The notes: generated by a model not told the origin, from the letters alone. DNA of 60,630 nucleotides, filler included, from Basidiobolus meristosporus CBS 931.73 (GCA_002104905.1; 3 parts of 3 records of this genome joined end to end with filler, not necessarily neighbours in it), one strand, 5' to 3'; positions 10,197 through 30,409 are shown, counted from the first letter of the whole stretch. Program-made: numbers and translations.

Positions 10197-12468
10197 ATGG
10201 AATACGATCATCAAGAATACGATATTCTGTGTGCGGGTTTCGGGCCAGCGGGAGTCTCCATTGCCATTGCCATGGCTGAAGATGGCCGCCTGCAAGGCTT
10301 TGAGGAACACAGCAAAGGAATCAACCAGGGCGGTCACTGGAAAGTCGGCTTCATAGAAAAGCAAACCACCCCAGTCTGGCATGGTGGTATGCTTATTGAT
10401 GAGGCTAAGATGCAAATCAGTTTCCTTAAGGATCTTGCCACCTTAAACAACCCCAAGAGTCACTTTACTTTCATCAATTATCTGAAGGAGAATAATCGAC
10501 TTGTTGACTTCACCAATTTGGGAACCACCCTGCCATACCGATCCGAGTTCAACGATTACGTAAATTGGGTTACCTCCCACTTCAGTAGCTTGGCTTTCTT
10601 CGGTGAGGAGGTTATCTCTGTGGAGCCTATTCTTCAAAGCGGCTCCAAGGAGATCGAACGCCTCCGAGTCACCTCGAAAAGGCTTGGTGATCAGAAAACC
10701 ATCGTGCGTACTGCAAAGCATTTCATTGTTGCAATCGGTGGTCAGGCACGTTATCCTGAGTGGGTCAGCGCAAATCAGAGCCAACACAACGATCGCATCA
10801 TGCACTCCTCCCAATATATCTATAATGTCTCAAGAATGCTTCCAGAGAGAGATGCCCCCTACTCCGTAGCCGTAGTTGGAGGGGGTCAAAGTGGAGCAGA
10901 GATCTTTCAGGATGTTGTCCAGCGCTATCCCAATTCCCGAGTCTCTCTTATTATCAGAGATAGCGCTTTGCGCCCATCGGATGACAGTCCATTTGTGAAC
11001 GAGATCTTCAACCCATCTTCTACCGAGTCCTTCTACAAATTGCCGGAGGAAAGACGTAGGGCTTTCTTGAAGCATAACAGTGCCACGAACTACTCGGTGG
11101 TCCGTCTTGAGCTAATAGAGAACCTTTACTCCATCCTGTACCAGCAAAAGCTCCCTGGCCACACTCAGAAGCACTCTATTCTTTCTTCAAGACAAGTGGT
11201 CTCTTGCGAATCTGACAACGGTAGACTTATGTTGAAGCTTGGACCATGTGACGAAGCCGGCCAGCTTCTGGGTGGGCCCGAAAATTTGACCGAGCACGCC
11301 TTTGATGCTGTCTTCGTTGCTACTGGTTACCAACGAAATGTACATTCCGATATTTTGAAGCCATTGGCTCCCTATATCTTGAAGACCGACGCCTGTGATC
11401 TTCCCATCGACAGGGACTACAAGCTTCGCATGGCCCCTACCTGCCATTCTAGTATATATCTTCAGGGTTGTTGCCAGGATACTCACGGTATCAGTGACTC
11501 TCTTCTTTCTGTACTTTCTATTCGTGCTGCTGAAGTTACGCAATCTCTCAGCCAGAATCACACCAAACTAACTATTGGTATGTTTATTGGGTTGCCGATT
11601 TTTCCACCGTGGCTCTAACCATTTCTCTTTCTATAAACCAGCCCGTAACGTCAAAGATGCCGACTCCGCACTTGTATATTCGTCCATCAACTTGAACGAT
11701 AAAAATAACCTGAATTATCTTTGGGAATGGGTGGATGACTTCAACACCAGAAGAGCACCCTCAAACCAGAGATCTGGATGGTTGCGCTTCATTGACCGCT
11801 CTATTGAAGGGAAACGGGTGACCACAAATGGGGTCAATCACCCATTGCGTCCACCTTCCCCTCCTCCAGGCCAACTGATCTACAGCCGCTACATTCCCAG
11901 CATCAAGAAGACTGTCGGCTTCCGGGTAGTGGATTTGCAGCAGGATCTTAATACCTTCCATACATGGATGAACAACCCTCGTGTATCCAAGTTCTGGGCT
12001 GAAGACGGAACTATCGAGGAGCACACCACGTACCTCAAGAATCTACATGCCGACCCACACATTATCCCTGTCATAGGCTTGATTGATAACGAACCATTTG
12101 GATATTTGGAAATCTACTGGGGCAAGGAGGATCGTTTGGGCGAATTCTATTTGGCCGATGACTACGATAGAGGTATTCACTGTCTAGTTGGAGAACAGAA
12201 GTTCAGAGGCCCTGAATACGTGCACACCTGGATGAGCTCTATAAATCACTTCGCGTTCTTGAGTGAGCCCAGAACCAGCCGTCTGGTTGGTGAGCCCAGA
12301 GCAGACAATGATAAGTTGATCGGCTACGCACAAAAAGAGGGTTACAAGAGACTAGGAAACATTCAGATGAAGCACAAGGAGGCTGCACTGCTCATGCTTT
12401 CTCGTAAAACATTCAACAGCAACATCGAGGCAGGGCAATCCCTAAGAGGTTGCAGCGCCAAACTCTAA
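10197..12468 (+). CDS. sidA: L-ornithine N5-oxygenase (SidA/PvdA family) fused to an N-hydroxy-amino-acid acyltransferase (IucB/SidL/SidF-type GNAT); 2 exons, 735 aa
   Basis: Exon 1 (10197-11577): FAD motif GFGPAG, WHGGML, MQISFLKDL, NADPH motif VVGGGQSGAE, ATGY, YLQG, HGISDSLLS. Intron 11578-11641 (GTATGT...CTAAC...CAG, 64 nt) joins in frame to exon 2 (11642-12468): HPLRPP, IYSRYIP, FHTWMNNPRV, FGYLEIYWGKEDRLG, DRGIHCLVGE, GEPRADN. Confidence 0.88.
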
Positions 12469-13033: not shown

Positions 13034-13838
13034 ATGTTATCTTCTCTACCTATAACCTTTTTCCTGGTGCTGGTCTCTTTAACGAAATTTTCGAATCCCT
13101 TGCCGGTTCTTCCAAGGGATAGCTCATTGCATAAGCGCGGAGACTTCCGAGGCGAAGGCACCTATTATGACCCTGGACTAGGTGCATGTGAGATTGTTTC
13201 TAGCGATACTGAATACATTGCGGCGCTGGTAAGGGCCACTTCTGTCCCATTGGTAATTTCCGCCCAGTTGCTAACCTTCTCCCCCCCAGAACCATGTTCA
13301 GTTCGGCGTGTTTGCTAGATCCAAGAGCAGTCCCGCATGCTTTAGCTGTGCCATGGTTCATGGACCCTCTGGAAGTGTCAAAGTAAAAATTGTCGATATG
13401 TGCCCTGGTTGTAAATATGGAGACATCGATCTCAGTCCCGTGGCATTCGAGAAAATCGCTCGTAAGGAAGATGGTCGAGTTCCCATCAGCTGGGAATTCG
13501 TTTCATGCGGCGGAGGGAATCCCGATGGTGGAAAACCTGCACCCCGACCATCACCCACTAAATCTATCAACCCTCCGAAGATCTCCAACCCTACATCTAC
13601 AACTAAGCTCCCAGCTACAACTAGCACACCGGCAAAAACCCCATCTAATCCATACAAGAAGGCTCCCGAGCCTACTGACCCCAAAGAACAACTCTGCAAC
13701 TTTACAAGCAAGTGCCGCAACGCTGGACAGGATGCTGGCTTTGAGGTATGTGTGAATGGCAATACTTTCCAGCAATCATGCGCACCCGGCACTGTATGTA
13801 AAGAGGCAGACGGGGATATATATTGTGATTGGGCTTAA
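13034..13838 (+). CDS. Secreted expansin-like/RlpA double-psi beta-barrel protein with Pro/Thr/Ser linker and Cys-rich C-terminal carbohydrate-binding-like module; 247 aa
   Basis: Signal peptide then KR site; GEGTYY-PGLGAC, VKIVDMCPGC, DIDLSPVAF. Intron 13229-13289 (GTAAGG...CTAAC...CAG) restores frame. C-terminus FEVCVNG...SCAPGTVCK...IYCDWA. Confidence 0.88.
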
Positions 13839-14576
13839 GGCTGTCGTGGAATGGGCCCAAATGGGCTACTAAATAAACCATAGGTTATACAGTTTATCCA
13901 TGAGGCCCTATTATGCTGAGATTAGTGTTGAAAATCTGAGGTCTGTATCTTGCGAACTATTCTAGACCGTTGCGGCCTTCGGATAATTTAGAGGTGATGA
14001 AAAATACCGTGAGAAACAACTGTACTATAAAATTCCAAATTAATGTGTTGCCCTTATCGCAAGTGCAGTCGAATCTCGGCCAATCTGGCAAGGTAATCGG
14101 AGTTCGGCTTTCGGTAATCGGCTGCTGTATATTTTCACTGGATTTGTTCAAGTGGAAAACAAGCATACACGAGACTACACAATCCAAGTGGCTTAGCTTA
14201 ACAATCATGATTTTTATCTGGCCACAATCAACACACCGTAGAGAGTAAGTGACATGCATCGACTTGCAAGTTTCAATCAGCCCTCTAAGCCACCGGGAGA
14301 TTTAGCAGAGAGAACATGGTAGAACATGTATCTGTGAGGTATCTGAATGAGGATAGGCACTTGATGGTAAGATCAACAACGTCATGAGGAAAGCATGGAG
14401 TGCAGGTTTCGTTATCGTACAGGCTCCTCGAATCTTCCCATTTTTTGAATACGTCATGCCAACCGTATAATTGAATGGTCGGGTTGGGTTTCTCAGTGCA
14501 CAGTTGAACGATTGAACCAAAATTGCAACATATCCCCCACATCACTAATCATCTTAGACCTCCTGGCCATGCTTTT

Positions 14577-14586
14577 GTGGCTTAGC
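14577..14586 (+). promoter_or_regulatory. GTGGCTTAGC motif upstream of repeat gene 1
   Basis: Same word found upstream of the other array members. Further copies at 14188-14197 (+) and 14285-14293 (-). Confidence 0.4.
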
Positions 14587-14695
14587 TCTTTACCTACTGA
14601 CAGTAGGAATCCGACAAGTATAAAATACTTGACGATAGCGTCAAAGTGCATCAATCTCTTCTGATTTGAGAACAGATCCTTATCGAGCCATCAAC

Positions 14696-15769
14696 ATGTC
14701 CTACTCTCAACAGCCTTCTCACTCCCGTGGCTCTAACTATGAACAAGAGCAGGGAGCACATAACCATCATCACCAGCACAACGATCAATATGAGCGTAAC
14801 AATGAGAGACAATCCAGGAACATCCAGCGTGGCCGCGGATTCGGTCACGAACAGGATGCTGAGTGGGAGCGCTCTCACAATCGCCAATATGGCCGCAGAT
14901 TTGGACGTCAATATGAAGATGATGAGGAGTTGGAACTCCCCCGTAGCCGCCGCTACGAGCGTGGATTCGGACGTCAATATGAGAACGACGAGGAGCTCGA
15001 ATACCCTCGCAGCCGTCGCTACGGTCGTGGCTTGGGACGCCAATATGACGATGATGAGGAGCTCGAATACCCTCGTAGCCGCCAGTACGGTCGTGGCTTG
15101 GGACGTCAATATGAAGATGACGAGGAGCTCGAATATCCCCGCAACCGTGAGTGGGAGCGCTCCCACAATCGCCAATATGGCCGCGGTTTCGGTCGTCAAT
15201 ATGGGAACGACGAGGAGCTTGAATATCCCCGCAACCGTCGCTACGGTCGTGGCCTAGGTCGCCAATATGAAGATGATGAGGAGCTCGAATACCCACGCAG
15301 CCGTCAGTATGGCCGTGGCTGGGGACGTCAGTACGAAGACGATGAGGAACTCGAATATCCTCGTAGTGGTCGCCGGAGCCGTAACCTTGGCCGTCGCTAC
15401 GGTCGTGGCCTAGGCCGCCAATATGAAGATGAAGAGGAGCTCGAATACCCTCGCAGCCGTCAATATGGCCGCGGCTGGGGACGTCAGTATGAAGATGATG
15501 AGGAGCTCGAATATCCCCGCAGTCGTCGCTACGGTCGTGGCTTTGATCGTCAATACGAAGATGACGAGGAGCTTGAATACCCTCGCAGCCGCCAGTATGG
15601 TCGCGGCTTGGGACGTCAATATGAGGATGACGAAGAACTCGAATACCCCAGCAGTCGTCGCTATGGTCGCGGATTCGGTCGCAATGCGGACGAGGAGGAG
15701 CAATACTCTCGCAGTCGCCGATATGGACGTGGATGGAACCGTCAGTATGAGAATGACAAGGCCTACTAA
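14696..15769 (+). CDS. Repeat protein copy 1 (357 aa), about 12 units of QYEDDEELEYPRSRRYGRG(F/L/W)GR; low-complexity, no signal peptide
   Basis: ATG at 14696 after TATAAAA near 14620. Synonymous variation between the 66-bp units preserves the protein motif. Confidence 0.85.
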   Translation: MSYSQQPSHSRGSNYEQEQGAHNHHHQHNDQYERNNERQSRNIQRGRGFGHEQDAEWERSHNRQYGRRFGRQYEDDEELELPRSRRYERGFGRQYENDEELEYPRSRRYGRGLGRQYDDDEELEYPRSRQYGRGLGRQYEDDEELEYPRNREWERSHNRQYGRGFGRQYGNDEELEYPRNRRYGRGLGRQYEDDEELEYPRSRQYGRGWGRQYEDDEELEYPRSGRRSRNLGRRYGRGLGRQYEDEEELEYPRSRQYGRGWGRQYEDDEELEYPRSRRYGRGFDRQYEDDEELEYPRSRQYGRGLGRQYEDDEELEYPSSRRYGRGFGRNADEEEQYSRSRRYGRGWNRQYENDKAY

Positions 15770-16168
15770 ATGATCTTGTATCAATCGTTATAGCGATGCA
15801 CTTGAGTCTAAAGGAAGACTAAAAATTCACTATTTCCAGAAATATCTATTAGCCTAACAAACGATTAACAATAAATGTTCAAAACATAAACAGTGAGCAT
15901 AGCTAATATTCTACTCTAATGTCTGTATACTGTACGGATCAAGTAGTACTACAAAGCAAAAATTATGTGAAAGGATTGCCCAAATCCGATCTCATACTAG
16001 TCTGTATTTCAAATATAAACAACGCATCTCTACCTCGTAAAGTTTATTCATGTGAGGAATGCTGCATGAAATTGCTGTGTTTAACATTCCCTTGAGCATA
16101 TATTATCGACTACCATTGGCTGCTACATCCACACTACCTGTCACAGATGAACACTGATCACTCACCTA

Positions 16169-16215
16169 ATGGCATAGGTCGTCAATATCAAAGTAATGAT
16201 GAAGTCTAATATCCG
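16169..16215 (+). pseudogene. Single decayed repeat-unit relic (GIGRQYQSNDEV*YP)
   Basis: ggcataggtcgtcaatatcaaagtaatgatgaagtctaatatcc aligns by eye to GRQYEDDEELEYP and has an in-frame stop. Confidence 0.5.
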
Positions 16216-16658
16216 GCCATCAATATGAGAATGACTATGAACCAAGATATCCCCATAGCCCTCGCCACAACCATGTTCAATATGTTTATAGCAGATATTG
16301 ACGCTATTAAGCAATGCAAAAGTGTTGTTGAACTGGGGTATCGCTTTAACCTCAATGATCTATTTGGCGTGTTTAACGAGCCAAACAATGTGTGCTAATA
16401 TAGCTAGTTACAACGCGACTCAATATTATTGAGCAAACAAGTCGTAAAAAGCTGGAGTGTATAATGTCTGGTGACTTCCCTAGCAGAGAAATAGAATTTG
16501 CGAAGAAGTCTAAGCTGGCCACTGTGGCATTCATTCAATTTCGCACATCAATATACTCATCGATAATATTCGCAAGGAGTAAATGAATCGAATCAATTGA
16601 TCCTAGATAACAATCTTCCATTACAGTATCAATCATATGCTTGATTCATTAATTCATC

Positions 16659-16684
16659 AAGTGGCTTAGCTTTGTCAAGCACTC
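16659..16684 (+). promoter_or_regulatory. Imperfect inverted repeat (R)AGTGGCTTRGC-N5-CAAGCACTC upstream of the TATA box
   Basis: Recurs at 18066, 19308, 19607, 21406, 21681 and 23147; ends about 120 bp before the ATG in gene-linked copies. Confidence 0.5.
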
Positions 16685-16802
16685 TTCCACTTGATATTTG
16701 AGTCGTATTCACTGTATATAAGGTAAGGTGAAGGCATACCAGTTCCACACTCTTCTGTCGATTTATCCACTGACTTCCGAAGACCTTCCTCTCTCTACCA
16801 TC

Positions 16803-17750
16803 ATGGCCAATTATCAACAACCTCGTCAAACCCGCGGTTCTCGTTACGAGCAAGACTTGAACAGACATAACAGCCAGCAACAATCTCGTTACGAACGTGA
16901 GGAACAAGAGTATTCCCGCAACCGCCGTTATGGACGTGGCCTCAATCGTCGATATGAGGATGAAGAGGAGCGTGAATATCCTCATAGCCATCGTTATGAG
17001 CATAGATTGGGACGTCAGCATGAACATGATGAAGAGCTTGGATACCCCAGCAACCGTCACTATGGACGTGGATTTGGTCACCAAGATGATGATGCGGAGC
17101 TCGATTACCCCCGCAACCGTCGCTATGGCAGAGGATTTGGCCGTCGATATGAAGACGATGAGGAGCTCGAATATCCCCGCAACCGTCGCTATGGTCGTGG
17201 ATTTGGTCGTCGCTCTGAAGATGAAGAGGAACTCGAATACCCCCGCAACCGCCGCTATGGCAGAGGATTTGGCCGTCAATATGAAGATGAAGAGGAGCCT
17301 GAGTATCCCCGCAACCGTCGTTACGGTCGTGGATTTGGTCGTCAATATGAAGATGATGAGGAACTCGAATACCCCCGTAACCGTCGCTATGGTCGTGGCT
17401 TTGGCCGTCAATATGAAGATGATGAGGACCTTGAATATCCTCGCAATCGTCGCTATGGTCGCGGGTTTGGCCGTCAACATGAAGACGATGAGGAACCTGA
17501 GTATCCCCGCAACCGTCGCTATGGCCGGGGATTCAGTCGTCAATATGAAGATGAAGAGCTTGAATACCCCCGTAATCGTCACTATGGTCGTGGCTTGGGA
17601 CGCCAATATGAAGATGACGAAGAACTCGAGTATCCCCGTAATCGTCGTTATAGCCGCGGATTCGGTCGCCAATATGAGAACGATGAAGAGCTTAAATACC
17701 CCGGTAACCGGCACTATGGCCGTAGCTCAGGTCGCCAATCTGGATGGTAG
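16803..17750 (+). CDS. Repeat protein copy 2 (315 aa)
   Basis: MANYQQPRQTRGSRYEQ leader, about 11 units QYEDDEELEYPRNRRYGRGFGR, ends GRQSGW. Confidence 0.85.
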   Translation: MANYQQPRQTRGSRYEQDLNRHNSQQQSRYEREEQEYSRNRRYGRGLNRRYEDEEEREYPHSHRYEHRLGRQHEHDEELGYPSNRHYGRGFGHQDDDAELDYPRNRRYGRGFGRRYEDDEELEYPRNRRYGRGFGRRSEDEEELEYPRNRRYGRGFGRQYEDEEEPEYPRNRRYGRGFGRQYEDDEELEYPRNRRYGRGFGRQYEDDEDLEYPRNRRYGRGFGRQHEDDEEPEYPRNRRYGRGFSRQYEDEELEYPRNRHYGRGLGRQYEDDEELEYPRNRRYSRGFGRQYENDEELKYPGNRHYGRSSGRQSGW

Positions 17751-18207
17751 TAAATTGCATATATACTGGCCATATCTCACTTTATGTATTGTGATTAAAT
17801 GATACATATCGATTGAAAATAAATTTATGTCATAATCAAGTACAATATGCTGATGGTCGAATTGATGCTTTCATACTGTAATAAAACCTAACCCTGAATA
17901 ATATCCTGGCGCATCCACGAAATTTTTCAGCTAGAGTTTCGGTCCGAACTTGCACAAAATTTGTCAGTAGTGTGTGAGTGAATATCCATCAAGGATGCCG
18001 TAGAGATCTTGAATTGCAACATCACTTTGATATCTGTAATCATATGCTCCGATTATCAATTTATCGAGTGGCTTGGTTTTAGCAGTCACTCCACTTAACA
18101 TCTATGTCACTTTAATTATATATAAGGTAAGGTGGTGGCTTACTAGTTCTACACTCTTCTGTCAACTTACTATCTGACTTCTGAAGACTTACTTCTTCTA
18201 CACCATC

Positions 18208-18918
18208 ATGGCCAGTTATCAGCAACCCCGTCAAACTCGTGGTCCTCATTACAAGCAAGACCTAAGCAGACGCAACGGCCAGCAACAACCTCACTACGAA
18301 CGTGAGGAACAGGAGTATTCTCGCAACCGCCGTTATGGACGTGGCCTCAGTCGTCATAATGAAGATGTTGAGGAGCATGAATATCCTCATAGTCATCGTT
18401 ACGAACACGGATTTGGACGTCAGTATGAAGATGATGAAGAGATTAAATATCCCAGCAACCGTGGATTAGGCCGTCATTATGAAGATGACGAGTAACTCGA
18501 ATATCGACATAGCCGCCGCTATAGCCGTGGCTCAGGTCGTCAATATGAGAACATTGAAGATCTTGAATACCCCCGCAACCGTCGATATGGTCGTGGCCTA
18601 GGTCGCCAATATGAGTACGATGAGGAACTTTAGCCGCCGCAACGGTCGTGGTTTTGGCTATCAGTACGAAGATGACGAAGAAGGCGAATATCCCCGCAAC
18701 CGCCATTATGAAGATGATGATGAATTTAACTATCCCGGTAGCCGCCGCTACGGTCGTAGCTTTGGCCGTCAATATGAAGATGATGATGAGCTTGAATATC
18801 CCCGCAACGTCGTTACGGCCGTGGATTCGGTCGCCAATACGAAAACGATGATGAGCTTGGATATACTCGTAGCCGCCACTATGGCCGTAGCTCAGGTCGT
18901 CAATCTGGATGGTATTAA
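18208..18918 (+). pseudogene. Repeat protein copy 3, disrupted
   Basis: GAA>TAA nonsense at 18493-18495, deletion/frameshift near 18630, single-base loss near 18808; still ends GRQSGWY-TAA. Confidence 0.8.
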
Positions 18919-19750
18919 GTTGCGTATGTACTGGCTATATCCCACTTTACATGGTGATTAAATGGTATGTTCTGCGCCTTTAAAATGATTAGTAAAAATA
19001 AAGTTGATATTTCATCAAGTTCCAAATATTTTGGTTGATTTAACATTACTTGCATAATGAAGCAAAATCCACCACTGCAACAGTGAAGCCCTGTTGAATA
19101 TGAAGCATTTGTATCGACCCATTTTCGGCAATATTTGTCAGTAGCATGAGGGTGAAGGCCCATTGATATGAAGCTCTCTCATCAACCTATTCTTTGATAA
19201 GATTTGCCAGTAACACATGGGTAATGCTTATTAAAGATCAAGCATAGATCTGGAATTGTCACATTGTTTCGACACCATTAATCATGTGTTAGGATCATCA
19301 ATTCACCAAGTGGCTTAGCCTTGTCAAGCACTCCCCTCTTTAGGTATATCTCGCCTTTTTTTTTAAGCTCAGGTAGAAGTATACTTGTTCATATGCGGAT
19401 TTATTCTCTACTGCTTTATTAATGATGTCGTGCTAAATATGATGCTCTCGTATCGGCCCATACCTGGACAATATTGGTCAATACAGTGTGGGTAAATATT
19501 CCACAGATATCCAATATCGATCGTGGGTGAATATTCCACAAAGATCTAGTATAGATCAAGTATATCAGCATCCCTTTAATGCCTGTGACCATATGCTTGG
19601 ATCTTTGAGTGGCTTGGCCTTGTCAAGCACTCCGCCACTTGTCATATGTGTCGTCCTCAATGTATAAAAGTTAATGAGGAAGTATACCATTTCCACACTC
19701 TTCTATCGATTTATCCTCCGACTTCCGAAGACCTTCCTCTCTCTACCATC

Positions 19751-21079
19751 ATGGCCAATTATCAACAACCTCGTCAAACCCGCGGCTCTCGTTACGAGCA
19801 AGACTTGAACAGACGTAACAATCAGCCACAATCTCGTTATGAACGTGAGGAGCACGAATATTCTCGCAGCCGCCGTTCTGGACGTAGCCTCAATCGTCGA
19901 CATGAGGACGAAGAGGAGCGTGAATATCCTCATAGCCATCGTTACGAGAACAGATTTGGACGTCAGTATGATGATAACAAAGAGTTTGAATACCCCCGTA
20001 ACCGCCGCTATGGCCGTGGCTTGGGTCGTCAATATGAAGATGACGAGGAACTTGATTACCCCCGTAACCATCGCTATGGCAGAGGGCTTGGCCGTCAATA
20101 TGAAGATGACGAAGAGCTAGAGTATCCCCGCAACCGTCGCTATGGTCGTGGCTTTGGCCGTCAATACGAAGATGATGAGGAGCTCGAATATCCACATAAT
20201 CGTCGCTATGGCCGTGGTCTAGGACGTCAATATGAAGATGACGAAGAGCTAGAGTATCCCCGCAACCGTCGCTATGGTCGTGGCTTTGGCCGTCAATACG
20301 AAGATGATGAGGAGCTCGAATATCCACATAATCGTCGCTATGGCCGTGGTCTAGGACGTCAATATGAAGATGACGAAGAGCTAGAGTATCCCCGCAACCG
20401 TCGCTATGGCCGTGGCTTGGGTCGTCAATATGAAGATGACGAGGAACTTGATTACCCCCGTAACCATCGCTATGGCAGAGGGCTTGGCCGTCAATATGAA
20501 GATGACGAAGAGCTAGAGTATCCCCGCAACCGTCGCTATGGTCGTGGCTTTGGCCGTCAATACGAAGATGATGAGGAGCTCGAATATCCACATAATCGTC
20601 GCTATGGCCGTGGTCTAGGACGTCAATATGAAGATGACGAAGAGCTAGAGTATCCCCGCAATCGTCACTATGGTCGTGGCTTCGGGCGTCGATATGAGGA
20701 TGATGAGGAGCTTGATTATCCACGCAGCCGGCGCTATGGTCGCGGATTTGGTCGCCAATACGAAAATGACGAAGAACTTGACTATCCCCGCAGCCGCCGC
20801 TACGGTCGTGAAGAAGAGCTTGAATATCCTCGTAATCGTCGTTATGGCCGTGGCTTAGGACGCCAATATGAAGGTGATGAGGAACTTAACTATCCCCGCA
20901 GCCACCGCTACGGTCGTGGCTTTGGCCGTCAATATGAAGAGGACGAAGAACTCGAATATCCTCGTAACCGTCGTTATAGCCGTGGTTTCGGTCGCCAATA
21001 CGAAAACGATGATGAGCTTGAATATCCTCGTAGCCGCCACTATGGCCGTAGCTCAGGTCGCCAAACTGGATGGTATTAA
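19751..21079 (+). CDS. Repeat protein copy 4 (442 aa, 17 units)
   Basis: Intact ORF with exact higher-order (multi-unit) nucleotide repeats; ends GRQTGWY. Confidence 0.85.
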   Translation: MANYQQPRQTRGSRYEQDLNRRNNQPQSRYEREEHEYSRSRRSGRSLNRRHEDEEEREYPHSHRYENRFGRQYDDNKEFEYPRNRRYGRGLGRQYEDDEELDYPRNHRYGRGLGRQYEDDEELEYPRNRRYGRGFGRQYEDDEELEYPHNRRYGRGLGRQYEDDEELEYPRNRRYGRGFGRQYEDDEELEYPHNRRYGRGLGRQYEDDEELEYPRNRRYGRGLGRQYEDDEELDYPRNHRYGRGLGRQYEDDEELEYPRNRRYGRGFGRQYEDDEELEYPHNRRYGRGLGRQYEDDEELEYPRNRHYGRGFGRRYEDDEELDYPRSRRYGRGFGRQYENDEELDYPRSRRYGREEELEYPRNRRYGRGLGRQYEGDEELNYPRSHRYGRGFGRQYEEDEELEYPRNRRYSRGFGRQYENDDELEYPRSRHYGRSSGRQTGWY

Positions 21080-21824
21080 GCTGCGTATGTACTGGCTATA
21101 TCCCACTTTACATGGTGATTAAATGGTATGCTCTGCGCCTCTAAAATGATTGGTAAAAATAAAGTTGATATTTCACAACCAAGTTCCAAAGAATATTGGC
21201 CTAGCTGATGCTACTTGCTGTAAAGTAATAAAATTTACCGCTGCAGCAGTGAAGCCGAATTAGATATGGAGCTCTTCCACTGACCCATTCTTTGAGAAGA
21301 TTTGTCAGTAACACATGGGTAATGCTTAGTAAAGAACAAGCATAGATCTGGAATTGTCACATTGTTTCGACACCATTAATCATGTGTTAGGATCATCAAT
21401 TCACCAAGTGGCTTAGCCTTGTCAAGCACTCCTCTCTTTAGATATATCTCGCCTTTGCTATTTTTAAGTTCCGGTGGAAGTATGCCAGACTCACATGACC
21501 CTTTATTCCCCACCGCTGCATTAGTGAAACCGTGTTGAATATGGTTCTCTTGTATCGACCCATATTTTGACAATATTTGTAAGTAGAGCGTGAGTGGTCA
21601 TTCATCAAAAATCAAGAATGGACCAAGGATTGCAAAATCCTGTGATTTTCATAATCATATGCCTCGATCATCAATTCGTCGAGTGGCTTGGCCTTATCGA
21701 GCACTCCGCCACACGGCATTTGAGTTGTGTTCACTGTATATAAGGTAAGGTGAAGGCATACCAGTTCCACACTCTTGTGTCGATTTATCCACCGACTTCC
21801 GAAGACCTTCCTCTCTCTACCATC

Positions 21825-22823
21825 ATGGCCAATTATCAACAACCTCGTCAAACCCGCGGCTCTCGTTACGAGCAAGACTTGAACAGACGTAACAACCAGC
21901 AACAACCCCGCTACGAACGTGAGGAACAAGAGTATTCTCGCAACCGCCGTTATGGACGTGGCCTCAATCGTCGATATGAGGACGAAGAGGAGCGTGAATA
22001 TCCTCATAGCCATCGTTACGAGAACAGATTTGGACGTCAGTATGATGATAACAAAGAGTTTGAATACCCCCGTAACCGCCGCTATGGCCGTGGCTTGGGT
22101 CGTCAATATGAAGATGACGAGGAACTTGATTACCCCCGTAACCATCGCTATGGCAGAGGGCTTGGCCGTCAATATGAAGATGACGAAGAGCTAGAGTATC
22201 CCCGCAACCGTCGCTTTGGTCGTGGCTTTGGCCGTCAATACGAAGATGATGAGGAGCTCGAATATCCACATAATCGTCGCTATGGCCGTGGTCTAGGACG
22301 TCAATATGAAGATGACGAAGAGCTAGAGTATCCCCGCAATCGTCACTATGGTCGTGGCTTCGGGCGTCGATATGAGGATGATGAGGAGCTTGATTATCCA
22401 CGCAGCCGGCGCTATGGTCGCGGATTTGGTCGTCAATATGAAAATGATGAAGAGCTCGAATCCCCCCACAGCCGTCGCTACGGTCGTGGCCTAGGTCGCC
22501 AATACGAAAATAATGAAGAACTTGACTATCCCCGCAGCCGCCGCTACGGTCGTGAAGAAGAGCTTGAATATCCTCGTAATCGTCGTTATGGCCGTGGCTT
22601 AGGACGCCAATATGAAGGTGATGAGGAACTTAACTATCCCCGCAGCCACCGCTACGGTCGTGGCTTTGGCCGTCAATATGAAGAGGACGAAGAACTCGAA
22701 TATCCTCGTAACCGTCGTTATAGCCGTGGTTTCGGTCGCCAATACGAAAACGATGATGAGCTTGAATATCCTCGTAGCCGCCACTATGGCCGTAGCTCAG
22801 GTCGCCAAACTGGATGGTATTAA
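21825..22823 (+). CDS. Repeat protein copy 5 (332 aa, 12 units)
   Basis: Near-identical to copy 4 at both ends and in the 3' flank; length differs by 330 nt = 5 x 66. Confidence 0.85.
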   Translation: MANYQQPRQTRGSRYEQDLNRRNNQQQPRYEREEQEYSRNRRYGRGLNRRYEDEEEREYPHSHRYENRFGRQYDDNKEFEYPRNRRYGRGLGRQYEDDEELDYPRNHRYGRGLGRQYEDDEELEYPRNRRFGRGFGRQYEDDEELEYPHNRRYGRGLGRQYEDDEELEYPRNRHYGRGFGRRYEDDEELDYPRSRRYGRGFGRQYENDEELESPHSRRYGRGLGRQYENNEELDYPRSRRYGREEELEYPRNRRYGRGLGRQYEGDEELNYPRSHRYGRGFGRQYEEDEELEYPRNRRYSRGFGRQYENDDELEYPRSRHYGRSSGRQTGWY

Positions 22824-23339
22824 GCTGCGTATGTATTGGCTATATCCCACTTTACATGTTGATTAAATGGTATGTTCTGCGCCTCTAAAATGATTGGTAA
22901 AAATAAAGTTGATATTTCACAACCAAGTTCCAAAGAATATTGGCCTAGCTGATGCTACTTGCTGTAAAGTAGTAAAATTTACCACTATTACAGTGAAGCC
23001 CTGTTGTGTATGAAGCTTTGCATCGACCCATTTTTCGGCAATATTTATCAGTAGCATGAGGGTGAATGTCCATTGGCCCAGTAGAGATCCGGAATTGTCA
23101 CATTATTTCGATATCATTAATTATATGCTGGGATCATCAAATCGTTGAGTGGCTTAGCCTCGCCAAGCACTCCTCCCCTATAGATTGATATCATCGTTCA
23201 AACACATATGCTATTCTATTCTCTACAAAGTCCACCATTACATTAGTGAAGCCGTACTGAATACGATGCTCTTGTACCAACTCATATTTTAACAATATTT
23301 GTCAGCAGAGCGTGGGTGGTTATTCATCAAAGATTACAA

Positions 23340-23594
23340 CATCCCGCAGTCGCCATTACAGTCGTAGATTTGGTCGCCAATATGAGAACGATGAAGATCC
23401 TGAGTTTCCCCGTAATCGTCACTATAGTCGTGGCTTAGGAAGACGATATGAAGATGACGAAGAACTCGAATACTCTCATAACCTTCTCTATGACCGTAAG
23501 CTTAGGACGACAATATGAAGAAGGCGAAGGGCTGCAATATCCGCGCAACAGTCAATATGATCTTAACTTTGGCCGTCAATCTGGAAAGTACTAG
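23340..23594 (+). pseudogene. Repeat protein copy 6, 5'-truncated frameshifted remnant
   Basis: Degenerate units (FGRQYENDEDPEFPRNRHYSRGLGR) ending GRQSGKY-TAG; the leader is missing. Confidence 0.7.
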
Positions 23595-24539
23595 GTGTTC
23601 ATATTTACTGGCTACATCACATTTTACATACTGTGGCTAAACGCTACATGCCTCTAAAACATCGGTGAAATCAAAGTTGATATTTCATGACTAACTTTTT
23701 TTATTATTTGCACATTAATTCATCGTGTAGTAAGTACAACATGTATTGTGGCAAACCCCACTTCAGCGAGGGTAGCACAATGCTCAATATGCCGACTTAT
23801 TCAAAAACGAGCCATATATTGTCAGCTTTTGTGAGGAGCACGTGAGTAATAGCTGTCAACGATTTGGTACAGATCGGAGATTGCAGCATTACTTCTAGTT
23901 CTTTAATAGTTCTATAGTTCAATGATTGGTCGAACAACATGGTGATTAACAAAATATTCGGTAGAAGTATACCATCAATATACAGGGATATTTTAGCATC
24001 ATGGCTGACGATTAGGTCGTCAATGTAAAGATAGTGAGTAACATGAGTAAACCTATTAATAGCGCTATGAATGTGACCTTGATTGCTATTCAGGCTCGTT
24101 GTAGCATTTACGGTAATGTAGTTCGATGCCGCGGCTTGACCACTATCGATTAGTGTCTTTTAATAAAACTGGACATCTTGATGGTAAGAGAAGATATATA
24201 CAAACGAACCAACGCTAGAAGCATACGTTTTAATTGTTTCTCCAATGGCAATATCAGAACTATCCTAATGCAAACATTCACACGCCGTATATATGGAAAT
24301 AATGTCACTCACATGTAAAGTATGCCCATGATTTCAATTGCTATCCTAGTGAAAATGATTTGTACTCTAGCGACTTAATCCAAAGGCCATCAATATTTTG
24401 TAAGCATTATTCTTGCCATCAAGTTCTAGAAAGGCGCTTTATTCATCTCAAGTTAGATTACTTACAAAACAATGACAAATTATATTTTACAGGTTGGGTA
24501 GAACCTAGTCTCATTTCTTATGTCAACATTGCTGCTTAA

Positions 24540-25707
24540 TTACACTTTGATTTCTTCCTCCTCAATCATCATGGTATCCTTCTCCCCACGCACCACCACA
24601 ATGTCCTTCTCGAGCTGCATAAATCCACCATACTTGTAGATCAAGATCGCCAGTATCCAGATAACCACGAACAACGATACGATGCAGTAGCCAACGATGT
24701 CGAAATTATCTCCAATGGTGCCAAAGAACTCCCAGAATGATCCGGTCAGCTCTAGCTTATCACCAAGAATGTTGAACACCTGAACCAGTCCAATGAGGAT
24801 GGCAATCAGCACGGAGATGAAGGTGATGGTGAAGTTGAAGTAGATCTTGCGGATAGGCGAGATAAAGGCCCAGCTGTAGGTGCACAACATGAGCATACCA
24901 TCCAGCGTGTCAATCAGGGACATTCCGGCAGTGAATAGGAACGGGAAGAATAGGATCAGTCCAATGTTGAGTCCGTTGTTGGCTTGTGTAGCAGACAGCG
25001 CCAATAATGTGATCTCGGTGGCTGTGTCGAACCCGAACCCGAACAACACCCCCAACGGATACATCTTCCAGCTAGCATCGATGAAGTTGAAGATTGGTCT
25101 GAAGAACCTGGACAAGACTCCTCCCGAGTTGAGCATCTCCTCCACATCAATCTCTCTGTATACCTTCTCTCGACGAAGTGTCTGCAGCTGTTTCCAAATG
25201 CTAACCAGGACAATTGCGTTCATGATACCGATTAGCAGTAAGAATGCACCAGATACACAAGTCCCAATCACTCCACTCACATCCTGGAATGCGGGGAACT
25301 TATCGGCCACTGCTGTAGCCGTGGCTGCGATGGCAATGGCTGCTACAACCACAATTGTCGAGTGGCCTAAAGAGAAGAAGAGTCCCACAAGGCATGGTCT
25401 CTTGCCAGACTGGATCAACTTTCTCGTGACATTGTCGATTGCTGGATATCCATTAGTCACGAATCGGTAAGCAATTAGAACTGATGATGATCTACCTACC
25501 AGTAATATGATCAGCATCTAAAGCATGGCGAAGTCCAAGGGTATATGCCAGAACTGCCTGGCTGACGAGTCCATTGTATGACCGCAAAGCAAGGATAGCG
25601 GCTACCCACAAGGCGATGTTTACCACAACCAAAGTGGAAATAGTAATGATGATCTTCCGCCTAAGCGGCTTATTCTCAGCTGTCATGAATGCCCTGTAAA
25701 CCTCCAT
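24540..25707 (-). CDS. nic1: High-affinity nickel permease (NiCoT/HoxN family), 369 aa, 2 exons
   Basis: Signature RHALDADHI, FSLGHST, LFGFGFDTATE. Intron 25442-25499 joins DADHIT-A-IDNVTRKL. Confidence 0.93.
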
Positions 25708-26553
25708 AGCGCCAATTCTGTATTATTAGAGTGCGGATATACTTTTTGAGTGGAAGATAATAGTTGAATGAGGTAGTGATTGGTGCAGAGGTTAGACTTT
25801 ACGTACCCATATTTATAGGTTTTCTCATATCACCTGGGATAGTGAGTAGGACCCAGGGTAGGTGTTTCCTGTTTCAATAAATCAACGTCAAGGCTAAACC
25901 ATCCACGGATGATAGGGGCTCCAACAATGGAACTGGGTACGAATGTAATCAAAAAGCTCTTTACCTGACTTTTGCAACTGATCATTGTGGTAAGATCAGC
26001 AGCATCATTGCGATAACCATTTTACCAAGTATGTGGACAAAAATTCGGTTGTAGTGGAAATATCTCGTCTAGCAGGAAAAGCTATTGGGGTATATCACCT
26101 GTGCTATGTTACCCAGTGTTGGAAATTTTCACACAAAGATAAGGGGCGGTTTGCTGATTGTTAAAGTACGTGATAATAAACATGTGACTCTCTTGCCACA
26201 TGCTAGATAGTGTCCCCATGCTGATCCAATTGGATTTCAAAGAACCGGCATTGGTACAAGTTGTATCCTCACCATTCTAGCTTGTATCGGATGAGGCAAT
26301 ATACCCAATTCCTGGATTTGGTTAGCTAGATAATCTTGCTTTTGATATTACACCATCTGAACTAATTCTACATTAGTGGTGATCTCTATATACTTTTATA
26401 TGCAATAACCCTTATATTGTCTTTTACACCCTTTATTAACAGAATGGAAGATTAAAATATTACTACCACTGTAAAAAGTTTGTTCATACGTGTTTACAAA
26501 CACCTTTCAATAGAGTCTTGTAAGTACCCAAGTTATCCATATGTATACCTGTT

Positions 26554-27460
26554 TTAAGAGAATACCTTAAATTTCAACTTCTCACGCACCACCATAATGT
26601 CCTTCTCGAACTTCCCAAATCCACCATACTTGTAGATCAAGATCGCCAGCATCCAGATAACCACGAACAACGATACGATGCAGTAGCCAACGATGTCGAA
26701 ATTATCTCCAATGGTGCCAAAGAGCTCCCAGAATGATCCGGTCAGCTCTAGCTTATCACCAAGAATGTTGAACACCTGAACCAGTCCAATGAGGATGGCA
26801 ATCAGCACGGAGATGAAGGTGATGGTGAAGTTGAAGTAGATCTTGCGGATGGGCGAGATAAAGGCCCAGCTGTAGGTGCACAACATGAGCATACCATCCA
26901 GCGTGTCAATCAGGGACATCCCGGCAGTGAATAGGAACGGGAAGAATAGGATCAGTCCAATGTTGAGTCCGTTGTTGGCTTGTGTAGCAGACAGCGCCAA
27001 TAATGTGATCTCGGTGGCTGTGTCGAACCCGAACCCGAACAACACCCCCAACGGATACATCTTCCAGCTAGCATCGATGAAGTTGAAGATTGGTCTGAAG
27101 AACCTGGACAAGACTCCTCCCGAGTTGAGCATCTCCTCCACATCAATCTCTCTGTACACCTTCTCTCGACGAAGTGTCTGCAGCTGTTTCCAAATGCTAA
27201 CCAGGACAATTGCGTTCATGATACCGATTAGCAGTAAGAATGCACCAGATACACAAGTCCCGATCACCCCACTCACATCCTGGAATGCGGGGAACTTATG
27301 CCAATGGCTGCTATAGCCACGACCGTGGAGCAGCCTAAAAGTCCATCATATGATCACAAGACAAGCATAGCGGCTACTCACAGGCCAACATTTACCATAA
27401 CCAAAGTTGAAATAGTGAGAAAAATCTTCCGTCTGGGTGGCTTATTCTGACAACTTTCAT
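26554..27460 (-). pseudogene. NiCoT paralog pseudogene
   Basis: 5' part (27300-27460) has two in-frame TGA stops and deletions removing RHALDADH to FSLGH. The 3' part is nearly identical to the intact gene. Confidence 0.85.
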
Positions 27461-28336
27461 AATACCAATCTTTATTACTGAATCATGTATTGATGGAGTG
27501 ACTACTGTACTAGGTGGAATGAGCTTAAGGATCTGAGCAGAAACCAATCTCATCCACGTAATCTGTCACTATAAAGCATACTTGTTTGAACTATTGGACT
27601 TAAGTTTAATTCTCGTATCCCCATTCGATTGGTATTAAATAGACTCGGCAGTTATTTGAAGAATGCACTACTGAACCTCGGCCATTGATATCTGCCACAG
27701 AAATCATTCTAATTAATTCAACAACTTAGGTTCTAAACTTATCTAAATCATGAATTACTACGGCTTCTAAATGTTGTCAGGGGAAGAGTACCAAATGCGA
27801 TGTGTGCTGGCTTGGGGATAAAGGAGTTGTGTTGGGTCGAAACAAGCTTTTCCAAGGAGCGAAATATTATTTGTCCACAACTCAACAGATCAGGTCAGCA
27901 GAGTCATTAGTAAATTACAATCAGGTTTGTAGGGTCTAGGTTCCATACCGCCCTCATGATTAATGACTTTTGTGGACCAATTGACTCGGTGATATAGATC
28001 CATGTATCTAGCAGGTAGTGTGGTAAATTACCTTAGGTCAACATTCGTAGCCATAAATGCCCATACTATGGTCATTATAATATATATTTGATGAAGATAA
28101 TCTACCATAATGCGCCCCAACAAATTCGCATCCCTGCACGATGCAATAGAGATGACAAAAATCCCTAGCTTCTAAATCTAGATAATATCATTGTTAGAAT
28201 ACACTGTATTTATTAAGTTGTAGTCGTTCTAGGCAAATATGTCCAGATTGGAGATCAGATACTATTTTAGGTGGTTTTGTGATTAGCTCCCCTCGCTCTT
28301 GATTGTATTATTCATGCCAACGCGCTCCAACAATGG

Positions 28337-29289
28337 TCATAGTGGCTTCTGCCCCCAAGTATAGTAAGCGAATCCGTAGGTTTTATACTCGAAACATTCT
28401 TTCTCAAATTCCTTCAGTAGCTGAGATATCTGCTGCTCCGTTTTCCCAGAGGCTGCAACAAACAAGGGCATCATGTTAGCAAAGATCATGCTCAGATCTT
28501 TCACCATGAATTTGTCTATTTCACTGTTGCTAATTCCCATGGGCGAAACGTGACGCGAGTGATGGATATTACTTAGCCCTCCTTGCTTCACAAAATTTGG
28601 GATTTCTTGAACGACGTAGGGATCGATTCCTCTTTTCTTCATGAAGGCGGTAAAGTATGGCTCCAGCTGTTTCCAGGCCGGACCGTAATCCCGGAAGTAA
28701 ATATCCGTGTCGATGATTTCTATCCAACCACCTGGCTTAACCACTCGTATCAATTCCGCGCATAGTTTCGGCCAGGCTGTAGCAGGCATGCCAGCAACTA
28801 GTAATCTTTGGTACACGAAGTCGAAAGTGTTGTCTTTGTATGGGAGTCCTTTTAAAATGTCGCCCTGTGTAAAGGTGAAATTTGGAAAGTCGTTCTCAGG
28901 GTCAATGCCACCGTTGACATCAATCCCGTCAAACATGGTGTCGGGAAACAGAAGAGACATGTCCTATGAATTGCGCATGTCAGCAAAACGCTATTCAAGA
29001 AAAATCATTCAGCCGGAATACCTTTGCCCAGATTCCAGTACCGCATCCCACATCCAAAATACGCTTGACGTCTTTACTAATCGGTGCACCATAATTACCT
29101 TTGCGAACATACCGGAAGATATAGTGTTGAATGTTCAATCTTGATTGCAAACAGTTAAACATTGTTCCTTTAAATTTGGAGAGTCACAGGAGCTGACCTA
29201 CTAAGCTCCGCTATGTTATTTGGCAATACGTAAGGAACTTCCTCAAACTTTGAGGTAGGCTCCTCTTCATTTGAATAGTTGGATAGCAT
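28337..29289 (-). CDS. SAM-dependent methyltransferase, LaeA-like fungal class; 278 aa, 3 exons
   Basis: Exons 29289-29198, 29139-29022, 28963-28337 with two 58-nt introns. YVLPNNIAELSRLNIQHY, SAM motif ILDVGCGTGIW, FDFVYQR, RVVKPGGWIE. Confidence 0.9.
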
Positions 29290-30409
29290 GATTCGAGAGG
29301 GATGGTTTGAGGATGCTTCATTGGCAAGCGCACTCCGATCGCTTATATACAAAAAGGGCCATCGGGATTCTAGAAAATGTGCTCCACACCACCTATCTAC
29401 AGAGGTACAATATGAAACATATCGTAGTGCATCGACTTTTCGAAATGGACTGAAGTTACAGTGTATAACACAGCAACTACATCCATAACATAGTATTCGT
29501 TCGTAAACTTCTTGGATTAATTCCAACTAATTGTAGCATCAGTAGTACAAGTGCAAACCCTTGCAAGCCACAAGAATTTGCCCGATGTCACATTAGGAGC
29601 CAGACTACGCCTTGGACAAATGAAAGATAATTCATCTGTTTCTCCATCATCCCAGTTGTTTCAGAGTTGGTAGCATCCATGATATTACTCGGCTACTCAA
29701 TGGGTGGAGTAGGTTACATATGGTGGGTTACACCATAAGTAATACCGGATAGTGGACTTATTAAGTGTGAAGAAATCCCCACCTGAATCTCATCCTCTTA
29801 CTTTCCGGCAGTATTTATCTCCATTCTTACATGTTAAGTTTTGCTAGTATGATTCTAGTGAAGCTTGATCCGCATGCTTGTCTCTATTTTTGCAAGCTCT
29901 ACCGAAAGCATTAATACCCTACTCTCCCCCAATAAGCCACAGTATATCCTTACTTTACCCAATCTCTGGTTGCTTCATGTACACCCTATGAGAATATAGG
30001 GTTTATCTTTTCTTTCATTCATGATATTGTTAAGTAGTTGTGGTATGGTGGGAACTCATGGAATCATTAACTTGGAATGACTGGTCACGATTTTTTAGGA
30101 TTTACAGTTTGGCTGCAGGCACAGGTTCACAAACAGTCACCAACAATATCCCCACTTTACCTAGTGTTCAAACATCCATGTGACTTCCTGGTTTCATATT
30201 CTGGCCAGTAGATATGGAAGCCTAGAATTGAGTAATGAATACATCATGAATATATGCTGGAATAATTTATACTTACTTATTCCTAAGCCTGATAGATCAA
30301 ACCAAAGGAGTTACCTGATGCTCCCATGTTGTCTTGTTGAGTTCAAACGAAAGAGATGCTGTAAGAAAGGTCCCAGAAAATAATGTGCAAAGTTCGACGA
30401 GGTTGAAAT

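Follow-up and report, generated by a model that had tools for sequence, protein, structure and literature searches.

What do the tandemly repeated genes on contig MCFE01000850.1 (30,409 bp) of Basidiobolus meristosporus CBS 931.73 (assembly GCA_002104905.1) encode, and is their product maintained by selection? The window analysed here, a 60,630-nucleotide stretch of DNA from this genome, carries between 14.2 and 23.6 kb a tandem birth-and-death array of single-exon genes for a protein family seen so far only in Basidiobolus. Four intact single-exon genes, g1 to g4, coding for 315-442 aa, are accompanied by one full-length pseudogene and two relics, all of them on the plus strand (Table 1). A preliminary description of the same DNA had listed exactly these members, and each was found at, or a few bases from, the position given there. 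The array is present as it was described; the family is, however, not confined to this locus, as a second array on contig MCFE01000387.1 of the same genome and a homologue in B. ranarum were found.

The GenBank gene calls match g1 (357 aa) and g4 (332 aa) exactly. A spliced GenBank model of 728 aa (window 16803-20743) joins g2, the pseudogene and part of g3, and an 861-aa model on MCFE01000387.1 is the same kind of fusion. Both fused models look like annotation artefacts due to the repeats. The lesson for annotation is that three members of such an array can be fused into one apparently false gene.

Repeat units, reading frame and promoters

Tandem Repeats Finder reported a period of 66 nt, plus super-periods of 132 nt and longer, in all four genes. 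Each protein consists of approx. 11-18 units of 22 aa, or about 11-17 if the ends of the acidic blocks are counted per gene, in line with the 11-17 copies estimated earlier. The consensus over 47 canonical units reads QYEDDEELEYPR(N/S)RRYGRG(F/L)GR. It divides into an acidic half, YEDDEELEY, with a charge of -6 and an Arg/Gly/aromatic half, PRNRRYGRGFGRQ, with a charge of +5. P11 and R22 were present in all 47 units, and R18, Y16 and E7 in 46 of them. Conservation across these units is residue-specific and goes beyond composition. Moreover, the acidic and the basic halves are equally conserved, and no pattern of core versus spacer was seen.

Since the repeats hold many frames open on both strands, the length of an open reading frame (ORF) proves nothing by itself. 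We therefore compared codon positions and frames. Among 42 canonical units, the entropy at codon positions 1, 2 and 3 was 0.21, 0.25 and 1.15 bits, and the pairwise ratio of non-synonymous to synonymous differences per site (pN/pS) was 0.145 at a pS of 0.67, with synonymous sites near saturation. Shifted and antisense frames gave ratios of 1.5-2.8, except for the antisense frame that shares the wobble positions. By codon geometry, this frame is interrupted by a stop at each point where a CGY codon for Arg precedes Tyr. Hydrophobic ORFs on the antisense strand (e.g. 16629-17714, minus strand) were considered as candidates and rejected, being interrupted in g1, g3 and g4 and having neither an ATG nor a promoter context. 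The substitution pattern indicates that the frame read in the preliminary description is the coding frame. Identity between units amounted to 0.90-0.92 at codon positions 1 and 2 and to 0.48-0.55 at position 3. Because this pattern is alike within and between genes, the likeness of the units does not stem from recent homogenisation. The non-repeat leader of g2-g4 showed a pN/pS of 0.18-0.29, its pS of 0.14-0.21 being on a par with the divergence seen in the non-coding flanks (0.12-0.17). When g2 and g4 were paired with their counterparts in the second copy of the region (h2 and h4), the pooled pN/pS was 0.19, a value based on few sites. Judged from these comparisons, every unit is under long-term purifying selection.

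The same data bear on the idea that the array is a functionless, expanding satellite which only looks coding and whose ORFs persist through repeat structure and gene conversion. Several frames are indeed kept open on both strands, gene conversion between g3 and g4 is visible, and decay is documented by one pseudogene and two relics. However, near-saturated synonymous sites coexist with 90 % non-synonymous identity both within and between genes, which homogenisation cannot yield. The non-repeat leader is constrained as well, the antisense frames are interrupted in three of the genes, and the promoter architecture is kept in a second species. We consider a satellite origin of the ORFs highly improbable.

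All copies share a common upstream layout: relative to the ATG, an invariant 9-mer, GTGGCTT(A/G)G, is placed at -119 to -142, and a TATA box follows between -77 and -88. The first ATG directly follows the TATA box, with no other ATG between TATA and start codon (read directly in g4), and an A(A/T)TAAA signal is located 39-101 nt past the stop codon. In the window, 19 occurrences of the 9-mer were counted where 0.33 would be expected, and all copies fall within 14188-23438. Nine of them are R-G-L-G codons inside repeats; the other ten are non-coding. Non-coding copies are confined to promoters and spacers of the family in two species, and none was found elsewhere in the window or in the 10.3-kb B. 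ranarum locus. Gene g1, the older paralogue, has no alignable flank in common with g2-g4; despite this it displays the same arrangement of 9-mer and TATA box, together with two further copies of the 9-mer upstream. By this architecture g1-g4 are ordinary-looking single-exon transcription units. The 9-mer resembles the core of the Crz1 calcineurin-response element.

Physical character and possible roles of the proteins

The four encoded proteins have a size of 40-55 kDa and consist of 19.6-21.4 % Arg, 16 % Glu, 11.4-12.0 % Gly, 11-13 % Tyr and 7-8 % Asp. Each contains 67-94 Arg and 37-57 Tyr residues, a single Lys and no Cys. Counts of K+R versus D+E were 71/82, 68/73, 95/107 and 72/75, corresponding to a fraction of charged residues (FCR) of 0.43-0.46 and a net charge per residue of -0.01 to -0.03. 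The charge-patterning parameter kappa was 0.38-0.41 compared to 0.15 for shuffled sequences (z = 9-13), and the charge autocorrelation at a lag of 22 residues reached 0.76, which places the tandem repetition far beyond chance. The isoelectric point is 5.6-6.75, and net charge passes zero between about pH 5.5 and 6.8. Mean Kyte-Doolittle hydropathy (GRAVY) ranged from -2.24 to -2.34, no hydrophobic run exceeded 1-2 residues, and the maximal mean over 19 residues was -1.6 to -1.76. Both leader types, MSYSQQPSHS and MANYQQPRQT, are hydrophilic. As hydropathy is low throughout, the profile and the leader gave no signal peptide, transmembrane or hydrophobic segment in the g1-g4 proteins. AlphaFold2, run on a single sequence, returned nothing but coil except for one short leader helix (mean predicted local distance difference test score 43, predicted template modelling score 0.15), and the proteins are predicted to be intrinsically disordered without a fold. 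Thus, the proposal of Cys-free block polyampholytes with regularly spaced Tyr and Arg and no hydrophobic core was borne out.

Our tentative interpretation, held with slightly less than even confidence, is that the g1-g4 proteins are intracellular, self-associating block polyampholytes which form a reversible condensate or gel and likely serve resting cells as a hydrophilin-like matrix for bulk protection and/or as an Arg-rich reserve. Acidic blocks would pair with Arg blocks on neighbouring chains in a multivalent manner, contacts of Tyr and Phe with Arg would strengthen cohesion, and the chains would assemble reversibly into a condensate or gel close to charge neutrality. Because the net charge is close to zero, with a zero crossing at pH 5.6-6.8, such an assembly should be switchable when the cytosol acidifies, ionic strength changes or water is lost. 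Published work offers precedents for these steps. [quoted passage not shown] Arg/Asp repeat proteins condense in a length-dependent fashion, and replacement of Arg by Lys or an excess of negative charge abolishes this behaviour (10.1101/771592). Phase separation is seen with blocky R/D peptides but not with strictly alternating ones (PMC9324279).

A bulk matrix in resting cells such as zygospores or conidia would be the most likely role. It is preferred because the proteins satisfy the operational definition of hydrophilins and because the Basidiobolaceae form thick-walled resting zygospores (PMC13370150). Hydrophilins are defined by a Gly content above 6 % and a hydrophilicity index above 1 (PMC11277543), and the Gly content and the mean hydropathy given above lie beyond both limits. 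Like hydrophilins and late embryogenesis abundant (LEA) proteins, the g1-g4 proteins are disordered, cytosolic by default and built from short repeats. They differ from LEA proteins and dehydrins in being strict charge-block polyampholytes with Arg in place of Lys; LEA and dehydrin motifs are Lys-rich. The bulk dosage, spore storage and desiccation protection envisaged in the preliminary description remain plausible.

A related explanation holds that the proteins are simply an Arg-rich nitrogen reserve, deposited and broken down at a later time, a ribosomal analogue of Asp/Arg storage polymers in which the acidic blocks only neutralise and pack Arg. It is compatible with the matrix interpretation. 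The high Arg content (20-21 % of residues; 1.8 N atoms per residue), the near-exact neutralisation of charge and the amplification of both gene number and unit number all fit such a store. On the other hand, if the proteins were nothing but a store, there would be no need to conserve Tyr, Pro and Gly at specific positions, and we rate this explanation as improbable.

The hydropathy profile also speaks to the earlier proposal of a glue. According to this view, the proteins would be secreted adhesive or wall material, e.g. the glue of capilliconidia or a dityrosine-crosslinked spore wall. Their Tyr/Arg/Gly-rich composition is in keeping with it, as is the adhesive material at the tip of the capilliconidia of Basidiobolaceae (PMC13370150). 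In contrast, a signal peptide or transmembrane segment is lacking, the leader MANYQQPRQTRGSRYEQ is strongly hydrophilic, and the first ATG follows the TATA box directly. The absence of any hydrophobic segment (maximal 19-residue value -1.6) contradicts the suggestion of a secreted glue, a mussel Mfp-like adhesive or a dityrosine-crosslinked wall protein, and we give such a role hardly any credence.

Alternatively, the proteins could be components of a nuclear or nucleolar condensate, or RNA-binding scaffolds, with the Arg/Gly/aromatic blocks binding RNA or acidic nucleolar proteins and the proteins partitioning into the unusually large nucleolus of the Basidiobolaceae. Blocky R/D peptides undergo phase separation together with RNA, poly-Glu and nucleophosmin and move to the nucleolus (PMC9324279), the nuclei of Basidiobolaceae are large and contain a prominent central nucleolus (PMC13370150), and each protein displays 7-14 GRG.GR motifs. 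However, net charge is slightly negative, while nucleolar accumulation is enhanced by a net positive charge (PMC9324279). The Pfam-A scan gave no RNA-binding domain, and a motif scan of the four proteins revealed no PY-type nuclear localisation signal (NLS), no classical Lys-containing NLS and no CAAX end. The triplet RGG was absent from all four, the pattern RG.{0,4}RG was found 0-1 times, and the RG dipeptide occurs once per 22-aa unit. RGG/RG-motif proteins carry clustered tri- or di-RGG, or tri- or di-RG, within 0-4 residues, and by this definition g1-g4 fall outside that class. We regard a nuclear or nucleolar function as unlikely.

Likeness to other condensing proteins is similarly partial. 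The abundance of Tyr and Arg, the Gly spacers and the alternating charge blocks of approx. 10 residues recall proteins of the FUS family and of the Ddx4 type, Ddx4 being the comparison for charge-block patterning. Unlike these, the g1-g4 proteins contain neither RGG boxes nor a prion-like Q/N/S-rich domain nor a folded RNA-binding or helicase domain, and their repeats are near-perfect and conserved residue by residue. Mixed-charge domains (MCDs), as defined by Greig et al., have an FCR of >=0.7 in a 60-residue window and a ratio of positive to negative residues of 1:1 +/- 0.3. All four proteins lie within this charge ratio and share with MCDs the disordered, near-neutral mixture of Arg and acidic residues. 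In MCDs Arg and not Lys is essential, behaviour depends on length, and blocky patterning favours phase separation. The differences are that half of each g1-g4 unit consists of Tyr, Gly, Pro, Gln and Asn, that the whole protein is repeat rather than a domain of a larger protein, and that there is no homology. The physical type, a hydrophilic, Arg/Tyr-rich, charge-patterned intrinsically disordered protein, is already known. What is new is the architecture: an entire protein made of a near-perfect 22-residue block ampholyte, conserved at the level of residues and encoded in rearranging tandem arrays.

Residue-level conservation across all units could also be read as the mark of a polyprotein precursor. 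[quoted passage not shown] The many near-identical short repeats, each with one dibasic RR (9-16 per protein; no KR), resemble KEPs and ustiloxin-type RiPP precursors, the three candidate accessory genes lie within 15 kb, and the pipeline for KEPs accepts RR sites (PMC6339444). However, the signal peptide that is required for, and defines, both kinds of precursor (PMC6339444) is absent in g1-g4. Because the proteins would not enter the secretory pathway, the formal presence of RR sites between the repeats is meaningless in this regard. An unseen upstream exon offers no way out, as the TATA-to-ATG interval is too short for one. Furthermore, conservation shows no contrast between core and spacer, a CAAX end is missing, and the homologue in B. 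ranarum is found among unrelated housekeeping genes. A released peptide is therefore very improbable.

Several points weigh against the interpretation of g1-g4 as a condensate-forming matrix of resting cells. Every unit is conserved residue by residue, while generic condensate-forming intrinsically disordered regions usually keep composition and not positions. Such conservation may point to a specific partner, to an ordered assembly or to release of a peptide. A generic liquid-condensate model does not predict it, and it is the chief feature left without explanation. Accordingly, of the coacervate grammar invoked in the preliminary description, the charge blocks and the spaced Tyr and Arg stand, but residue-specific conservation does not follow from it. 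The threshold in FCR that characterises MCDs is not reached, the maximum over 60 residues being 0.52-0.57 in g1-g4. None of the four proteins matched a Pfam profile of LEA proteins or dehydrins at E values up to 1. Exact look-ups of g2, g4 and the mosaic gene of the second array found these sequences on record in this genome only. Codon usage is peculiar and carries no clean signature of high expression: 91 % of the Arg codons are CGT or CGC compared to 38 % in neighbouring genes, and NNG codons are nearly absent from four-fold families, whereas TAT is preferred over TAC and TTT over TTC. As these signals are mixed, codon bias was not used as a proxy for expression; RNA-seq data of CBS 931.73 exist (PMC7466969). 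Finally, the suggested tie to resting cells derives purely from the biology of the Basidiobolaceae.

A more far-reaching version would account for the conservation. The proteins may be natural, genetically encoded "designer" block polyampholytes, with every 22-residue unit a finely tuned acid/Arg-Tyr module, that turn into a switchable cytoplasmic gel, glass or storage granule on acidification or drying and provide a lineage-specific matrix for dormancy or protection of resting spores. Conservation would then reflect an ordered zipper between chains in a specific register rather than a generic liquid. We consider this version possible yet rather doubtful. If they are made, the g1-g4 proteins would be among the cleanest natural pure block polyampholytes, with Arg chosen over Lys, charge balanced within a few units and purifying selection acting on each position of the unit. 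They would offer a natural test case for the influence of charge blockiness and of Tyr/Arg stickers on phase behaviour, and they raise the question why such a sequence stays conserved residue by residue. Basidiobolus is an early-diverging fungus that is associated with the gut and occasionally pathogenic, and this genus-restricted, fast-rearranging array may explain part of its stress or dormancy physiology.

Relatives and dynamics of the array

The four proteins were compared to several databases. A Pfam-A scan at E values up to 1 gave no family, apart from a single spurious match (0.17) to GPD_NAD_C_bact, and the PHROG library gave no match. At E <= 1e-3, g4 had no match in a word-index homology search, which, when repeated with the 88-aa protein of B. 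ranarum, recovered that protein alone. When 1.84 billion representative proteins were searched exhaustively with HMMER, seven hits were obtained, of which only K7432_003974 is a true relative. The ESM Atlas contains g4 letter for letter and no usable feature match. Scans of JGI metagenome contigs and of prokaryote genomes (GTDB, one per species) produced pattern matches only and no relatives; an origin by horizontal gene transfer from bacteria or phages, for which they gave no support, was dropped. A full-text literature search found no paper containing the motif strings. Together with the Pfam and PHROG results, this agrees with the earlier statement that the proteins match no described family. 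On sequence grounds the genes represent a genuine protein family with no homologue found outside Basidiobolus and no entry in Pfam or PHROG.

K7432_003974 is a hypothetical protein of B. ranarum AG-B5 (GCA_040143965.1, locus L002, 10001-10267) and a true homologue. It has a g1-type MSY..QP leader and RRYGRGFGRQYE(D/E)EEE.YPR units, which are 57-77 % identical to units of g1 and g4. The promoter is organised as in the array, with GTGGCTTAG at -126 and a TATA box at -82. In contrast to g1-g4, the protein is modelled as 88 aa only. As the repeat runs on in frame beyond the stop codon to the end of the contig, the gene is either truncated in the assembly or broken. It is flanked by other genes than the array (NAC, ArfGap, LMWPc and others), and there is no synteny with the window. 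A common signature can be given for the family: a hydrophilic M(S/A)(Y/N)..QP leader, units of 21-22 aa of the form QYE(D/E)xEE.(Y/F)PR(S/N)R(R/Q)YGRG(F/L)GR, and, in the promoter, GTGGCTTRG upstream of TATA. It is found in g1-g4, in the copies of the second array and in K7432_003974.

The top-scoring hit of g4 (E 6.9e-19) was P0002, a protein encoded between the Mu F-like head-morphogenesis and major capsid genes of a bacteriophage head module (locus L003, 5789-7648). It contains approx. ten copies of QSRRYGRR(Y/F) alternating with acidic stretches. However, P0002 and its IMG/VR relative (L004, 3001-4902) possess conserved non-repeat regions at both the N- and the C-terminus, and their acidic spacers vary in length. 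P0002 also has CPNCGH zinc-ribbon knuckles, and its gapped identity of approx. 35 % to g4 is confined to the low-complexity part. We read the resemblance as convergence and not ancestry, i.e. as a convergent polyampholyte in a scaffold-like position.

The second array of B. meristosporus was reached via the best match of the NicO genes that follow the array in the window. The region MCFE01000387.1:62191-83320 (L005) has the same gene order as window positions 14100-30409 and is collinear with them at 96-99 % identity, its array being rearranged. The region comprising the array, two NicO genes and a methyltransferase is thus present twice, with a different composition of the array in each copy. 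Either the second copy is a haplotig, or the region has undergone a recent segmental duplication. g2 and g4 differ from their counterparts by 3 and 9 nt, respectively. The pseudogene and its counterpart are separated by five substitutions and no indels, so that the frame-breaking lesions appear to be shared and older than the split. The counterpart of g1 (L005, 19458-20563) shows one substitution and four 1-nt indels in homopolymers, which are probably consensus errors of the assembly rather than decay.

Rearrangement is evident from the remaining members. In the second array, a g4-like gene takes the place of g3 and is followed by a mosaic gene of 309 aa that matches g4 in its 3' half and in the flank downstream. 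In the window, g3 and g4 are essentially identical over their last approx. 110 codons and exactly so over the last 60 (20750-21079 versus 22494-22823), whereas the 3' flanks are only approx. 85 % identical, which points to gene conversion between the two genes. In the leader of the pseudogene, 10 synonymous and 11 non-synonymous private changes were counted, and these numbers suggest that it was constrained until recently. It was therefore discarded as a neutral control, being uninformative on relaxation. Altogether, the array evolves by birth and death with unequal crossing-over and conversion.

Feature coordinates and neighbouring genes

Table 1. Genes, remnants and promoter elements of the array and 9-mer sites in two species. 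Positions refer to the window unless another locus is named; (-) marks a copy on the minus strand.
Feature	Position	Strand	Details
Distal 9-mer copy GTGGCTTAG upstream of g1	14188-14196	+	inverted copy also at 14285-14293
g1 core promoter	14577-14625	+	GTGGCTTAG 14577-14585 (-119 from ATG), TATA box 14619 (-77)
g1, intact, 357 aa	14696-15769	+	leader MSYSQQPSHS; ORF scan, GenBank model identical
Degenerate remnant in g1-g2 spacer	16171-16268	+	~1.5 repeat units
g2 core promoter	16661-16721	+	9-mer at -142, TATA at -88
g2, intact, 315 aa	16803-17750	+	leader MANYQQPRQTRGSRYEQ
Full-length pseudogene	18208-18920	+	promoter (9-mer 18068, TATA 18119) and ATG kept; TAA 18493-18495; frameshifts near 18632 and 18809
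Solo promoter-fragment copies with 9-mer in inter-gene spacers	19310-19318; 21408-21416; 23149-23157	+	
g3 core promoter	19609-19669	+	9-mer at -142, TATA at -88
g3, intact, 442 aa	19751-21079	+	longest gene, ~17-18 units, 132-nt super-repeat
g4 core promoter	21683-21743	+	9-mer at -142, TATA at -88
g4, intact, 332 aa	21825-22823	+	GenBank model identical
5'-truncated degenerate relic	23342-23594	+	~4 units and C-terminal tail GRQSGKY*; frameshift near 23503
Non-coding 9-mer sites	14188, 14285(-), 14577, 16661, 18068, 19310, 19609, 21408, 21683, 23149		
9-mer sites, B. ranarum	L002: 9684(-), 9875		

The genes surrounding the array code for a P450, an ABC transporter split by introns, a fused ornithine oxygenase/acetyltransferase, an expansin-like protein with a DPBB domain, two NicO proteins in tandem and a methyltransferase. 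The NicO genes, near-identical and predicted to encode nickel/cobalt transporters, are located directly 3' of the array at 24540-25517 and 26554-27276; the NicO transporter on this contig corresponds to GenBank ORX77999.1. His is comparatively frequent in g1 and in the first units of g2-g4 (HNHHHQHN, YPHSHRYEH), and no functional link to the NicO genes was seen. Just upstream of the array, positions 13308-13838 encode a DPBB_1 domain (expansin/RlpA-like), then a linker rich in Pro, Thr and Ser and, at the C-terminus, a module rich in Cys, probably as the last exon of a secreted protein acting on the wall. Further upstream, at 10197-12468, ornithine N5-oxygenase and Acetyltransf_8 domains are combined in a single gene for 735 aa, a length that agrees with the annotation once one GT-AG intron of 64 nt (11578-11641) is removed. 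From its domains, this fusion looks like a hydroxamate-siderophore enzyme.

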